Assembly (NCBI GenBank): GCA_002269645.1
Contig: NIVC01001813.1
Span: 62,001 to 126,000, forward strand
Direction: 5' to 3'
Length of the DNA: 64,000 nucleotides
Source: Macrostomum lignano
Taxonomy: Eukaryota
Made by a program: the position numbers and the translations under genes. Position 1 is the stretch's first letter; the number at the start of each line of letters is the position of its first letter. The notes beneath the pieces are model-generated. The model did not search any database, was not told where the DNA came from, and saw only the letters and a program-made list of their open reading frames with translations. Of this stretch, positions 22,230 through 35,546 are shown piece after piece.

Positions 22230-25200
22230 ATGCACCTCATCCTGTCAATCATTTTGTTTCACATCGCGGAATTCCTGGTCGCGGACTGTCGGGAGATGAA
22301 CTCGTCCGGGCCACTGCGAACAAACTTTTCTGAGTTTGACATGAGCGAAAGTGAGCTGCAAATTTGAGTTTTACTTCACATTCCTTTGTACTTCTAACAC
22401 GAGCAGTGACACTAATATGATAAATTGTTTCTGCAGAGTACAAGTACCTGGGCTGCTACGAGCAGGTGAGAAATGACACAGACCTGCCTCATATTGTTCC
22501 AATAGAGAGTATGAGCAGGGCCAGGTGCTACATGTACTGCATGGACCGGGGCAACCTGTTCTTCGGTCTGAGCGGGGACACCTGCTACTGCGGCGACTCG
22601 TACGGTTCCACAAGACGGAGGGCCGAGTCCGCCTGCAGCTCCAGCTGTGGCCTGGAGCCTGAAGAGAAATGCGGCGGGGTTGGCGCAGTGTCCGTGTTCA
22701 TCATCATCGAGAGTGAGTTTCCGGTTGATGGCTGCTGAAAGTAATGATTTATTAGCGTTTGGAGAGACCGCACGCTCCGTCCTCTTGATGCTGATTGGCT
22801 AGCGTCTAAAAAGGGGGTGGTGGGTTTGCAGACTCTGCCCTCCTCTTGAATGCTGATTGGCTAGCGCCTAAAAGGGGGTGGTGGGTTTGCAGACTCTGCC
22901 CTCCTCTTGAATGCTGATTGGCTAGCGCCTAAAAGGGGTAATGAGTTTTCGGACTCTTCTATTGTCCTCTTGACGCTAGATAGCACCGAAAAAGGATAAA
23001 GATTTCTCTGGTGCCCTTTCCTCATCGAGATGCAGATTTTTAGTTAGCGCCTGAATGAAGATGGACACTTCAAATTTCACACAAGTAAAAAACTGCTTGA
23101 CTTTACAACCCCCACCCAGAATTCATCCCAATGGGCTGCTTTCTCCAGTGGTACCAAATGGATGCCGACCACACATTTTTGGGCGATAACTTTACGAAAT
23201 TGGGCTGCGCCCTGACCTGCCAGCGTGAGGTTCAGTCGCTGTTTTTCGGCTTAAAAGACGGGCACAAATGCGACTGCGTCCGCTCTGTTAATTGGTTCCT
23301 TCCGAAAGCGGACGAGGATTGCCTTGGCCCCTGTTTGGAGCCTCTGATTACTCGGTGCGGAAAGAATGGACTGATGTCTGTCTACCAAATTCAATACGGT
23401 GAGGGACCGGGCGGCGGGGTTGGAATAAGGAGGGGTTGAAAGGGCAGGAAGTGGGGTTGTAATTGGGAGGGGTTAAAGGGGCAGAGAGTGAAGTTGTATT
23501 AGGAGGGTTTGGAAAGGCGGGGAGTGGAGTTGGAATGGAGAGGGGTTGGAAGAATCAGGTTAGAATAAGGAGGGGTTGGAGGGGCGAGGAGTGGGGTTGG
23601 AATAGGGAGGGGTTGGAGGGGCGGGGAGTGGGGTTGGAATAGGGAGGGGTTGGAGGGCGGGGAGTGGGGTTGGAATAGGGAGGGGTTGGAGGGGCGGGGA
23701 GTGGGGTTGGAATAGGGATGGGTTGGAGGGGCGGGGAGTGGGGTTGGAATAGGGAGGGGTTGGAGGGGCGGGAGTGAGGTTGGAATAGGGAGGGGTTGGA
23801 GGGGCGGGAGTGAGGTTGGAATAGGGAGGGGTTGGAGGGGCGGGGAGTGGGGTTGGAATAGGGAGGGGTTGGAGGGGCGGGGAGTGGGGTTGGAATAGGG
23901 AGGGGTTGGAGGGGCGGGGAGTGGGGTTGGAATAGGGAGGGGTTGGAGGGGCGGGGAGTGGGGTTGGAATAGGGATGGGTTGGAGGGGCGGGGAGTGGGG
24001 TTGGAACAGGGAGGCTTTGGAGGAGTTGTGTGGTATGGAACTGCAGGCGGAGTGAAACAGTGGCGTTTCTATATAACCCACATTATTCAGCGTCCAGCAT
24101 GAGCAGGATGCTGGGCTCGTACATCAGCTTCATGGGCGAGGGCCGGCAGATTCTGGTCAACATCAGCTCGGCCACCCTGCCAGGAGTGACTATAGCGCCC
24201 AACGCGGACCTGTTCCTGCAGCTGTATTCAGAGGACGCCCAGAACAGCGGGAGATTCAATGAGCTGATCGGTCGAACTCCGAGTGCGCGGGCCAGTGAGT
24301 TTCAAGTTGGGAATTGTGGCTGATTGTTGGCGATCAGAACTGCTTACAGCACGCAGTTTCCTTCGCCTTGCAGCGTCGTGCCCGGAGAACTGGCTGGGGT
24401 TTTCCATGCCTGGCCAGGGCTATCGCTGCTACCTGCTGGCGGACCGGCCGGCCCTGAACTGGACCGGCGCTCTGCAGCGCTGCTGGCAGCTGGGCGGCGA
24501 CCTGTTCTACAAGGAGGAGGAATCTGAGCTGGGCTTGCTGGCCAACTCCAGCGCCACCGCGGCAGAGCGCTGGATCGGCATGTACATGGAGGCCGGGAGT
24601 GCCGTGTTCACCTCGACTGGGGACACGACGGCTTTGAACGGCAGGGGCAGTCGGTGGGTGCCCAGCCTGGCTGAGAACGGCTGCGTCCGGCTGGAGTCTA
24701 GGAGCGGCGTGACCACCAGGCACCCCTGCGCCGCCGGCCTGGGCTTCGTGTGCAAGCGCTTCGGCTGTGAGTGCCTCACTATCTATCTATCTATCTATCT
24801 ATCTATCTATCTATCTATCTATCTATCTATCTATCTATCTATCAATCTATCTATCTATCTATCTATCTATCTATCTATCTATCTATCTATCTATCTATCT
24901 ATCTATCTATCTATCTATCTATCTATCTATCTATCTATCTATCTATCTATCTATCTATCTATCTATCTATCTATCTATCTATCTATCTATCTATCTATCT
25001 ATCTATCTATCTATCTATCTGCAGCTCTCCACTCTAGCTGGAACTACGGGTTCCCCAAGGCAGTCCGGGCGCACCGCCAGATGAGGCTGGTGCTCCGGCA
25101 GGTGGTGAACGGCTCAGCCAGCCCGCATCCCGTGCTGCAACTGAATTTCAGCCTTCAGCTGGGCAATTCCCACACGCTTGAAATCCCCTCGTGTCCAGGG

Positions 25201-34200: not shown

Positions 34201-35546
34201 GAGAGAGAGAGAGAGAGAGAGCCAATTAGAGACCAGCAGAGTGACAGGCTGGAGAGAGAGAGTCAGCCAATCAGAGTAACACTGAGCAGAGACAGGGAGA
34301 GAGACCCAGCCAATCAGAGACCAGCAGAGTAACACCTAGTAGAGAGAGGGAGAGAGAGCCAGCCAATCACAGAATGTATATTGATATTTTCACTATCTGA
34401 ACTGTAATTCTGAAATTGCAGGTGTCCGGCCTTCTTATTTAGTAAGCGACAACTTTCAAAGCTTACTACTTTTGCAATAAAAATGTTTTTTGTCAAATCA
34501 GTCAGTCGCTAAAAATTAGAAGTCGCTAAAAATGACTGCAGAGAGAAAGCGAAGGCACGGTCTGCTCATCGGAGCTCTACTTGTACTATCGGGAGAGTTT
34601 TTGCCGAAACCGGAACGGGGTTCACCCGATCTTCAAGTACGGATACAGGACCGGCCGTGAGTTCAAGTTCGGGATTTCCTGTGCGCCCTGCCGGTCATAG
34701 ACTGGCGTTTCTCTGCGGTCATAGACTGGCGTTTCTCCTCGGTCATAGTCATAGACTGGCTCTCTTTGCGGTCATAGACTGGCGTTTCTCTGCGGTCATA
34801 GACTGGCTTTTCTCTGCGGTCATAGACTGGCGTTTTTCTGCGGTCATAGACTGGCGTTTCTCTGCGGTCATAGACTGGCTTTTCTCTGCGGTCATAGACA
34901 GGCTTTTCTCTGCAGTCATAGACTGGCTTTTCTCTGCGGTCATAGACTGGCGTTTCTCTGCGGTCATAGACTGGCGTTTCTCCGCGGTCATAGACTGGCG
35001 TTTCTCTGCGTCTGTAGTCATAGAATGGCGATTCCATTGGGTTATAGAGTTGCTTCACTCTGCGATCATAGAGTTGCTTCTCTCTGCGATCATAAATTGC
35101 ATTGTTTCGATCACAGAGCAGTTGTTTTCTGCGCTCTGAGCTGCTTCAAAGTGCGCCTGCCTCCAGCGGTCATATGGGACCCGCAACCCCACCTCTCCGT
35201 CTCAGTGTCGATGGTCCGAGAGCTGGAGCAGAACCTGAGGCGCAGGCAGAACCGCTCGTTGACTGACAGCGACAGCTCGTACTTCTCCCAGATACTGTCC
35301 GCTCCGTCCGGTCAGACTCAGGCTCTGCTGCGCCGGAAGCGGGAGGTCAGCCAGTCCGTGCTGCGCCGGCACTACTGCTACTCGGATGAGGCGATCAGGC
35401 GGGAACCGAATTGGCGGCAGAAATGCTGCTGCGGCAGCTGCAGCCGCCTGTTCTTCATCGTGCAGTGCCGCCATCCGTACGAATCCGTGCCGTCTGGCTC
35501 CTGCGACCTGCACTGGGAGCGACTGCCGCTGCGGCTGACTGACTGA
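22230..35546 (+). CDS. Secreted mosaic protein, ~1195 aa: signal peptide, WSC, WSC, C-type lectin, F-type-lectin-like x2, CUB, C-terminal insulin-like domain
   Basis: 14 exons with AG/GT ends giving one open frame (3588 nt): 22230-22350, 22437-22712, 23120-23398, 24091-24294, 24374-24766, 25025-25225, 25304-25723, 26279-26467, 26631-26810, 27469-27861, 33501-33917, 34422-34441, 34542-34656, 35167-35546. WSC (YLGCY...CYCGDSY...CGG..AVSVF), CTLD (SCPENW...CY...W..A...C...GGDL...WIG...C...FVCK), FTP (CAQT...QPWW...LSLCELVAYG), CUB (CQWLI...VLLTF...DYVDVYEG...MTVVFVTD...GF). Confidence 0.8.
23540..24010. repeat. ~37-bp G-rich minisatellite (G-quadruplex-prone), intronic
   Basis: GGGGCGGGGAGTGGGGTTGGAATAGGGAGGGGTTGGA tandem copies. 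Confidence 0.93.
24779..25020. repeat. (ATCT)n microsatellite forming almost a whole intron
   Basis: About 60 ATCT units between donor 24767 and acceptor 25024. Confidence 0.97.
26937..27247 (+). mobile_element. tRNA-derived SINE with CORE-like central domain
   Basis: A box TAGCGTAGTGG (~26945), B box GGTTCGATTCC (~26987), CORE-like TGTGCCCCTTAACAAGACACTTAGCC...TTCAGTTCACCCAACTGTAAAATAGG (27017-27077), (TAA)n-like tail. Confidence 0.78.
27874..28887. repeat. 17-bp satellite (CTGACTAACTGACCCAC); continues at 33007-33490 and also at 25930-26120
   Basis: Tandem array split by the LINE insertion. Confidence 0.96.
28888..33006 (-). mobile_element. Non-LTR retrotransposon ORF2 (AP endonuclease, RT, RNase H, C-terminal CCHC), R1/LOA/I-group-like, 5'-truncated
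   Basis: APE (LQINLQH, LIQEPW, GGDLNAHH, SDH), RT (FRPISL, QGGVLTP, YADD), RNase H (YTDGS, HSDSQAAL, WVPGHVGIRGNELAD), C..C...ET.EH...C. (AAGT)n 3' tail; apparent 15-bp TSD CTGACCCACCTGACT. Confidence 0.93.
31318..31484. mobile_element. 167-bp Tc1/mariner-type MITE inside the LINE
   Basis: Perfect 28-bp TIR CGAGGGGCACTATTAAAGTTCTGAGCCT with TA on both sides. Excision restores the in-frame ORF (EAAKI|PSFLRL). Confidence 0.92.
34018..34360. repeat. (GA)n microsatellite with AGCCAATCAGAG interruptions
   Basis: Read directly. Confidence 0.92.
34542..35546 (+). CDS. Insulin/relaxin-superfamily-like domain (last two exons of the mosaic gene)
   Basis: B-like chain VCSSELYLYYRESFC (Cys codons 34563, 34602), phase-1 intron inside the C-peptide-like linker, RRKR at 35331-35342, A-like chain KCCCGSCSRLFFIVQC (35424-35468) fitting CC-x3-C-x8-C. 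Confidence 0.65.
34690..35000. repeat. 24-bp minisatellite (CTGCGGTCATAGACTGGCGTTTCT) in the intron between insulin-like B and A exons
   Basis: About 12 tandem copies. Confidence 0.93.

Follow-up and report, generated by a model that had tools for sequence, protein, structure and literature searches.

A predicted fusion of an insulin-like module to a secreted lectin/CUB mosaic protein in the flatworm Macrostomum lignano

Gene structure of the locus

Here we describe a gene of Macrostomum lignano that is predicted to encode an insulin-like module at the end of a large secreted lectin/CUB protein. The gene occupies positions 22230-35546 on the plus strand of the window, by which we mean the complete stretch of 64,000 nucleotides that was analyzed (contig C1813:62001-126000); all positions below refer to this window, and the genome searches covered the 764-Mb assembly of 5269 contigs. 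Fourteen exons were rebuilt (Table 1), with CAG at every acceptor and GT(G/A)A at every donor, and the consistent phase that had been proposed for them in the original prediction was reproduced. The phase is 0 at the outset and then 1 ten times, after which exon 12 (20 nt) leads to phase 0 and exon 13 (115 nt) back to phase 1, resulting in a spliced open reading frame (ORF) of 1195 amino acids and a stop.

The explanation that we favor, with a probability of about 0.64, is that this is one gene for a secreted mosaic protein with a signal peptide, two WSC domains, a C-type lectin domain, two degenerate F-type-lectin-like modules, a further domain and a CUB domain, followed by an insulin/IGF-like tail in the order B/C/A. 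The predicted in-frame fusion of the insulin-like module, which would lack a separate signal peptide, to the lectin/CUB scaffold is in our view well supported, because the splice sites are canonical, the ORF is under purifying selection in a second homeologue and the same layout is found behind a single signal peptide in an old paralogue. The stretch HMVMRVRPSYLRESEG is expected within the fused protein.

The claim that the insulin-like part has no separate signal peptide held up when the sequence upstream of it was surveyed. On the plus strand of window bases 1-34541, which amounts to about 34.5 kb on the 5' side of the B-chain-like exon 13 (hereafter the B exon), exon 1 is the sole signal-peptide exon with a usable GT(A/G)AG donor. 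The TGA reported in the frame of the B exon is present at 34533-34535, and the (GA)n repeat does exist (34018-34221) but lies about 320 nt upstream rather than directly adjacent. A signal-peptide-like ORF that starts from the ATG at 34532 (34532-34660, MTAERKRRHGLLIGALLVLSGEF) was considered as the frame of exon 13 and rejected, with a GC content at third codon positions (GC3) of 0.42, codon log-odds of -18 and an early stop once spliced; it is probably a coincidence.

The codon statistics speak for the proposed frames in both insulin-like exons. GC3 reaches 0.71 in the B exon (0.45 and 0.42 in the other frames) and 0.84 in exon 14, which carries the C region and the A domain (0.57 and 0.49 in the others), as compared with 0.76-0.80 in the scaffold exons. 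Likewise, the proposed frames of these two exons have codon log-odds of +24 and +62, whereas the other two frames of the B exon have -14 and -18; those of the A exon are also negative. The strongest donor after the B exon is at 34657 and the best two acceptors give exon starts at 35167 and 35206, the latter as an alternative in-frame start of exon 14; relative to the B and A frames, all of these sites are in phase 1.

Three near-identical copies of the locus are present in the genome (C1813, C819 and C816), which fits the hidden polyploidy of M. lignano, and none of the three contains a disabling change. In the homeologue C819 the whole ORF and all splice sites are kept, with 16 synonymous and 14 non-synonymous differences (Sd 16, Nd 14); the resulting ratio of non-synonymous to synonymous substitution rates (omega, dN/dS) of about 0.27 indicates purifying selection. 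A donor for splicing in cis (GTAAGC) is located 100 nt on the 5' side of the B-exon acceptor, and under the rule that an upstream cis donor favors cis over trans splicing (quoted in PMC8629364), cis splicing would be favored at this junction.

Table 1. Exons and associated features of the gene, in window positions; a slash marks the splice junction
Feature	Position	Strand	Description
Exon 1	22230-22350	+	Start codon and signal peptide (MHLILSIILFHIAEFLVA...); phase-1 donor GTGAGC
Exon 2	22437-22712	+	WSC domain 1; Pfam PF01822, E 5.3e-14, 52.7 bits
Exon 3	23120-23398	+	Weak WSC-like domain 2; PF01822, E 8.2e-4, 20 bits, below the cutoff of 27.8
Exon 4	24091-24294	+	68-aa segment; canonical splice sites; no Pfam match
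Exon 5	24374-24766	+	C-type lectin; PF00059, E 1.3e-6, 29.6 bits, above the cutoff of 22.6
Exon 6	25025-25225	+	67-aa segment; no Pfam match
Exon 7	25304-25723	+	Divergent F-type-lectin-like (galactose-binding-like) module
Exons 8 and 9	26279-26467, 26631-26810	+	One domain, with a counterpart in exons 2-3 of the paralogue C1641 (23% identity, z 4.6)
Exon 10	27469-27861	+	Divergent F-type-lectin-like module
Intron 10	27862-33500	+	17-mer satellite array split by a LINE-type retroelement; acceptor ctgtgctgcag/ at 33498-33500
Exon 11	33501-33917	+	CUB; PF00431, E 2.5e-9, 37.9 bits, above the cutoff of 21.4; phase-1 acceptor, phase-1 donor GTGAGT
Exon 12	34422-34441	+	20-nt phase-adapter micro-exon, (R)VRPSYL, phase 1 to 0; acceptor ttgcag/, donor /GTAAGC
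AATAAA in intron 12	34476-34481	+	Overlaps a TAA that is in frame if the donor at 34442 is unused
Exon 13	34542-34656	+	B-chain-like, RESEGTVCSSELYLYYRESFCRNRNGVHPIFKYGYRTG; Cys at 34563 and 34602 (C-x12-C); acceptor CTGCAG/, phase-1 donor GTGAGT
Exon 14	35167-35546	+	C region and A domain, C-x15-CCC-x2-C-x8-C (Cys 35376; 35424-35468); ninth Cys 35502; stop 35544-35546

Domains of the scaffold

Matches above the Pfam cutoffs were obtained for the WSC domain of exon 2, the C-type lectin domain (Lectin_C) of exon 5 and the CUB domain of exon 11, which agrees with the domain list proposed originally; the second WSC domain of that list falls below the cutoff, and the two F-type-lectin-like modules are reached by transitive homology only. 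Exons 7 and 10 have no Pfam match at E<=10. Exon 7 is similar to a member of a genomic family that is positive for PF22633 (BLASTP E 2e-4), and for exon 10 the genome contains a family of at least 150 copies, members of which exceed the PF22633 cutoff (42.7 bits) and carry the F-type lectin motif. By this route both exons are assigned as F-type-lectin-like modules, each of them degenerate. In exon 10, by our reading of the motif, the usual fucose-binding histidine is replaced by glutamine. Given this replacement and the degeneration of the modules, fucose binding is doubtful, and so would be sugar binding by these modules in general.

F-type-lectin-like (PF22633) domains are greatly expanded in M. 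lignano, with at least 150 loci that are often arranged in tandem, for example on C636, C637, C34 and C438.

The protein has a single hydrophobic peak besides the signal peptide, a WSC strand interrupted by charges at about residue 122, and the sequence offers no convincing membrane segment beyond the signal peptide, as had been noted before.

The relationship of the C-terminal module to insulin

The A domain CCCGSCSRLFFIVQC (35424-35468) matches in full a PS00262-type pattern for the A-chain signature CC-x3-C-x8-C, as does no other sequence in the window, at an expectation of 0.015 per 64 kb in Markov simulations. The domain shows the flatworm signature CCC-x2-C-x8-C that has been published for the insulin-like peptides (ILPs) of schistosomes as CCCX2CX8C (PMC5391603). 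An extra cysteine is placed 15 residues upstream of the CCC motif, and a cysteine is likewise found upstream in the Pfam-positive ILPs of M. lignano, at distances of 14 (ILP-a), 11 (ILP-b) and 13 (ILP-e) residues. An hhalign comparison with an insulin-family alignment gave a probability of 92.7% (E 4.2e-7) over a span of only 25 A-domain columns, and a profile built from the two fused-type modules had five matches among 177,635 distinct PDB sequences, all of them to IGF-II, the best with an E-value of 0.064.

The exon structure shows further similarities. A phase-0 intron precedes the B exon as in ILP-a, the first cysteine being seven codons into the exon in the window gene and six in ILP-a, and another intron, in phase 1, follows the B chain of the window gene. 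Read from alignments, the CSSEL motif and the C-x2-R-x-G tail of the B exon resemble canonical B chains. We consider it highly probable, judging from these features, that the C-terminal module is homologous to the insulin superfamily and represents a divergent subtype, and we regard the insulin relationship overall as moderately supported by the sequence.

A paralogue with the same arrangement

A genome search with exon 10 and the CUB exon, at 41-44% identity, identified an older paralogue at C1641:24012-29023, with homeologues on C1640 and C1776. The gene is compact, spanning about 5 kb with short introns, and its 8 exons have canonical sites and join into a clean ORF of 615 amino acids. The order is a signal peptide, a domain like that of exons 8 and 9, a domain like that of exon 10, CUB, a 41-nt exon (DDEYLDNGKRSDFS), a B exon and a C/A exon, and the arrangement is intact in all three homeologues. 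The last three junctions of the C1641 gene are placed at 28016>28092, 28132>28219 and 28327>28704. We regard this paralogue as the decisive evidence for the predicted fusion.

The adapter exons measure 20 nt in the window gene and 41 nt in the paralogue, both lengths being 2 modulo 3, and therefore both allow the passage from a phase-1 CUB exon to a phase-0 B exon. The acceptor of exon 11, ctgtgctgcag/GTTGC, is homologous to ctgcag/GATGTGGC in the paralogue, where the CUB domain scores 25.6 bits. The B exon of the paralogue (KCNLPSYAEKLYTLCYNRGRINPIYLYGNKTG / DPLRKCNLPSYAEKLYTLCYNRGRINPIYLYGNKTG) also has the spacing C-x12-C, and its C/A exon reads C-x15-CCC-x2-C-x8-C-x9-C, with nine cysteines in the module and CCCRYCSLRYLSRYC as the A-chain signature; PF00049 gives no match to it at E<=1. 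Module by module, the identity between the two genes ranges from 23 to 43%, with 43% for exon 10 (exon 4 of the paralogue), 42% for CUB, 31% for the B exon (z 6.7) and 27% for the C/A exon (z 3.0). The similarity of the B exons is thus significant, while the C/A exons are more diverged.

The search for relatives with the same architecture, as suggested in the original prediction, was therefore successful within the genome, where the CUB, adapter, B and C/A layout recurs, but not beyond it. With exon 14 as the query, a phmmer search that covered all of 1.84 billion representatives returned as its sole match the UniProt partial protein A0A1I8I027, which derives from the same locus. Nothing further was found in word-indexed searches with the 885-aa scaffold, with A0A1I8I027 or with exon 10 plus CUB, and exact look-ups showed that the models of 1195, 1182, 615 and 142 amino acids are absent from the protein collection. 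Neither scaf1813, scaf819 and scaf816 nor insulin has an entry in the supplementary tables of the M. lignano genome papers.

Canonical ILP genes are also present in the genome, at least five in number and each in two to three homeologous copies (C1195/C1935; C1059/C225/C1097; C2227/C2226; C1550/C127/C162; and C1935, plus strand). Several of them have A domains of the form C-x11..14-CCC-x2-C-x8-C and signal exons of their own, which in the canonical ILPs are located at most 1 kb away. Two canonical genes adjoin on opposite strands on C1935. The introns of the canonical genes contain tandem repeats that include copies of the B-exon acceptor and start.

Alternative explanations

Several observations weigh against a single fused gene, and they are best considered together with the main rival, in which two genes form an operon-like pair. 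The lectin/CUB gene would then end in a terminal exon from 34422 (tail RVRPSYLVSDNFQSLLLLQ and a stop), with a scaffold protein ending in ...VSDNFQSLLLLQ, and the insulin-like mRNA would take a spliced leader (SL) at 34541/34542, giving a downstream product, M-RESEGTVC..., that starts from the ATG of the leader and has no signal peptide. The SL sequence of M. lignano, its terminal ATG and the trans-acceptor motif [T/C]TNCAG have been described (PMC8629364); CTGCAG at the B exon fits this motif and the ATG would be in frame. The SL exon with its GTAAG donor occurs in 30 exact copies in the genome, about 30-39% of M. lignano genes are trans-spliced to the SL and 7% of the transcripts are polycistronic. 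Furthermore, between exons 12 and 13 there is an AATAAA together with an in-frame TAA, which is the sole AATAAA in 33900-36300, is placed 60 nt before the acceptor and is followed by a T-rich run. The sole public product of the locus, the 151-aa 5'-partial A0A1I8I027, begins exactly at 34542, uses the acceptor at 35206 and is not joined to anything upstream. The low GC3 of micro-exon 12 (2 of 7 codons) and the failure of all of the protein searches above to find homologues outside the M. lignano genome also count against the fusion. Yet the two-gene product would have no signal peptide despite its insulin-type disulfide framework and dibasic sites, and a strong cis donor stands 100 nt upstream of the supposed trans acceptor. 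The paralogue shows the same in-frame join from linker to B exon, with no AATAAA in the intron between them. An AATAAA has a chance of about 0.2 of arising in an AT-rich intron of 100 nt, and the fragmentary annotation of an internal exon would likewise produce a 5'-partial model beginning at an acceptor. We therefore consider the separation into two genes unlikely, although the two outcomes could coexist through alternative processing. Two other ways of severing the module from the scaffold seem less likely still. Since the scaffold exons are all flanked by phase 1, exon 1 could be joined directly to micro-exon 12, so that a prepro-ILP of about 210 amino acids would be the main insulin-like product and the full-length fusion minor or absent; exon 1 ends and exon 12 accepts in phase 1, any skipping among exons 2-11 keeps the frame, and the cysteine that would remain after signal cleavage (DC...) might make the cysteine count even. 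We have seen no evidence of exon skipping, however, and the compact paralogue, 5 kb long and with short introns, keeps scaffold and ILP together; this points to constitutive inclusion, and we hold the short form to be decidedly improbable. That the insulin-like exons are instead the decaying remnant of a partial duplicate, a pseudogene that lost its signal exon and came to lie on the 3' side of CUB by accident, would account for the missing signal exon, the non-canonical B spacing and the odd number of cysteines. This we find hardly credible, as the ORF is intact with a strong codon bias, the arrangement and the cysteine framework are kept in a paralogue that is only 27-31% identical in these exons, and the three homeologues are free of disabling changes.

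A different objection accepts the fusion and disputes the nature of the module, which could be a lineage-specific cysteine-rich domain that has acquired CC(C)-x2/3-C-x8-C by chance, aided by the TGC/GCN-rich stretch in which the CCC motif indeed sits. PF00049 gives no match at E<=10 to the spliced module or to a mini-construct of B plus A, the separate exons likewise have no Pfam match, and in a scan of the genome PF00049 finds other ILP loci and not this one. BLASTP against a canonical ILP reaches E 0.17, phmmer against PDB returned nothing, and hidden Markov models (HMMs) built from four M. lignano ILPs gave an insignificant E of 0.43 for the A exon and did not match the B exon. The B chain has the spacing C-x12-C in the window gene (VCSSELYLYYRESFC) as well as in the paralogue (KCNLPSYAEKLYTLC), as compared with x11 in the canonical M. 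lignano ILPs, and the module contains nine cysteines. The AlphaFold2 model of A0A1I8I027, run as a single sequence, has a mean predicted local distance difference test (pLDDT) score of 34.9 and no confident fold. Against a chance resemblance stand the framework C-x11..15-CCC-x2-C-x8-C, which is common to the Pfam-positive M. lignano ILPs and the published schistosome ILPs, the hhalign result, a PDB profile that picks out IGF-II and nothing else, the CSSEL motif and tail of the B exon, and the intron phase that it shares with ILP-a. On balance we think that a domain of independent origin is improbable, by a shade more so than the separation into two genes. The B/C/A assignment in the original prediction is favored by the A signature, the IGF-II and insulin-family profile matches and the intron phase; the Pfam profile, the B spacing and the cysteine count speak against it, and the structure model is of low confidence.

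Repeats and neighboring sequences

Nearly all of intron 10 consists of repeats. A 17-mer satellite, (CTGACCCACCTGACTAA)n, occupies 27873-28891 and 33007-33492, and a LINE-type retroelement on the minus strand (29036-33053), which is also present in the homeologue C816, carries endonuclease and reverse-transcriptase ORFs (788 and 530 amino acids). Intron 7 contains an insertion (25926-26167) made up of the 17-mer satellite and a 54-nt duplicate of the beginning of exon 11 with its acceptor, in which AG is changed to TG; the insertion is absent from C819 and its 75-mer is unique in the genome. The idea that the 46-nt start of exon 11 is a transposon end was rejected, as this sequence is found only at the three homeologues and in the one window-specific copy in intron 7.

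Minisatellites are abundant across the gene (21056-22110, 23416-24023, 24779-25020, 34692-35010, 35669-35874 and 36570-36998). Among them are 35 units of a 30-mer just 5' of the start codon, 17 units of a 37-mer in intron 3, (CTAT)60 in intron 5 and 13 units of a 24-mer in intron 13. Several of the arrays are open in multiple frames and produce long spurious ORFs. What appears to be the start of the next gene follows at 36260-36340 on the plus strand, about 700 nt past the insulin-like stop, with an ATG, a signal peptide (MARLSLLSAILLHLVVVSMQQ) and a GTGAGT donor. Neither AATAAA nor ATTAAA occurs between 35546 and 36300.

Origin, processing and significance

One scenario for the origin of the fusion is that an ordinary ILP gene of three exons (a signal exon, phase 0, a B exon, phase 1, and a C/A exon) lost its own signal exon, and that the remaining exons were captured downstream of the phase-1 CUB exon, joined to it by a short adapter exon that leads from phase 1 to phase 0. 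The module would then enter the endoplasmic reticulum by means of the scaffold signal peptide and could fold with probably four disulfides and one spare cysteine. Proprotein convertases may cut the product of the window gene in its C region, at RRKR or RR, and that of the paralogue in its linker, at GKR, so as to yield an insulin-like ligand that is either attached to the scaffold or released from it.

The cleavage site that had been proposed ahead of the B chain, R-x4-R (RPSYLR), does not correspond to the convertase consensus. The dibasic sites of the window gene are instead found inside the C region (RRR, RRKR at 35331-35342, RR and RR), and its linker site is weak. In the paralogue the candidate is the GKR in the linker, with none around the C region, which means that its product may stay single-chain as the IGFs do; the processing sites are thus not conserved between the two genes. 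It may even be speculated that M. lignano has a small family of scaffolded insulin-family ligands, in which a secreted scaffold of glycan-binding domains (WSC, C-type lectin and F-type lectin) and CUB tethers an insulin-receptor ligand, presents it or gates its release by convertases (at GKR or RRKR) on matrix, mucus, food or microbial glycans, but we regard this as a long shot.

To our knowledge, and within a limited literature search, the precursors of the insulin superfamily are small across animals, with a signal peptide and the B, C and A segments. The architecture has so far been seen only in M. lignano and looks like an undescribed packaging of an insulin-family peptide. If our interpretation is true, an insulin/IGF-like tail on a lectin/CUB mosaic of 600-1200 amino acids would represent a domain architecture new to this family, kept by two paralogues, and would provide a clear example of capture by exon shuffling, in which a mosaic gene of phase-1 exons and a hormone exon in phase 0 are connected by a phase-adapter micro-exon. 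Questions arise as to whether the ligand is released or tethered, whether a B chain with C-x12-C can still adopt an insulin fold, and whether the module acts on the flatworm insulin receptor, which is of relevance to stem cells, growth and regeneration in this model. The public annotation would also be corrected, since A0A1I8I027 is a 5'-partial protein that was automatically named "DBF4-type domain-containing protein," a name for which there is no Pfam support and which probably stems from a weak zinc-finger profile match to the cysteine-rich A domain.

Comparison with known systems

In terms of sequence signals, the locus resembles the SL trans-spliced operon pairs of M. lignano in that both parts are on one strand with a short gap, an acceptor of the type [T/C]TNCAG and an AATAAA about 60 nt upstream. 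It differs from them by the in-frame cis donor upstream, by the paralogue intron without a poly(A) signal and by a trans product that would lack a signal peptide. With the mosaic lectin/CUB proteins, composed of WSC, C-type lectin, F-type lectin and CUB domains, it shares the signal peptide, the modules of one domain per exon and the phase-1 introns on both sides; however, the insulin-like C-terminal module is not found in any described member known to us, and the F-type modules are here too degenerate for Pfam.

The flatworm ILPs (SjILP and SmILP; in M. lignano C1195/C1935, C1059/C225/C1097 and C1550/C127/C162) share with the window module the A-domain signature CCC-x2-C-x8-C with an extra cysteine 11-15 residues upstream, a B exon that starts 6-7 codons before the first B cysteine after a phase-0 intron, an intron in the C region and the C-x2-R-x-G tail of the B chain. 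They are small precursors with a signal exon of their own and the B-chain spacing C-x11-C, and PF00049 detects the canonical loci, whereas the window module has no signal exon of its own, has the spacing C-x12-C and a ninth cysteine in the C-terminal tail, and forms the end of a mosaic protein of 615 or 1195 amino acids. Unlike the window module, the vertebrate IGFs (IGF-I and IGF-II) have six cysteines and a C-x11-C spacing in the B domain, and they are not preceded by a large N-terminal scaffold. Nonetheless, it is IGF-II that provides the sole PDB profile matches, if only at an E-value of 0.064, and the paralogue may, like the IGFs, consist of a single chain.

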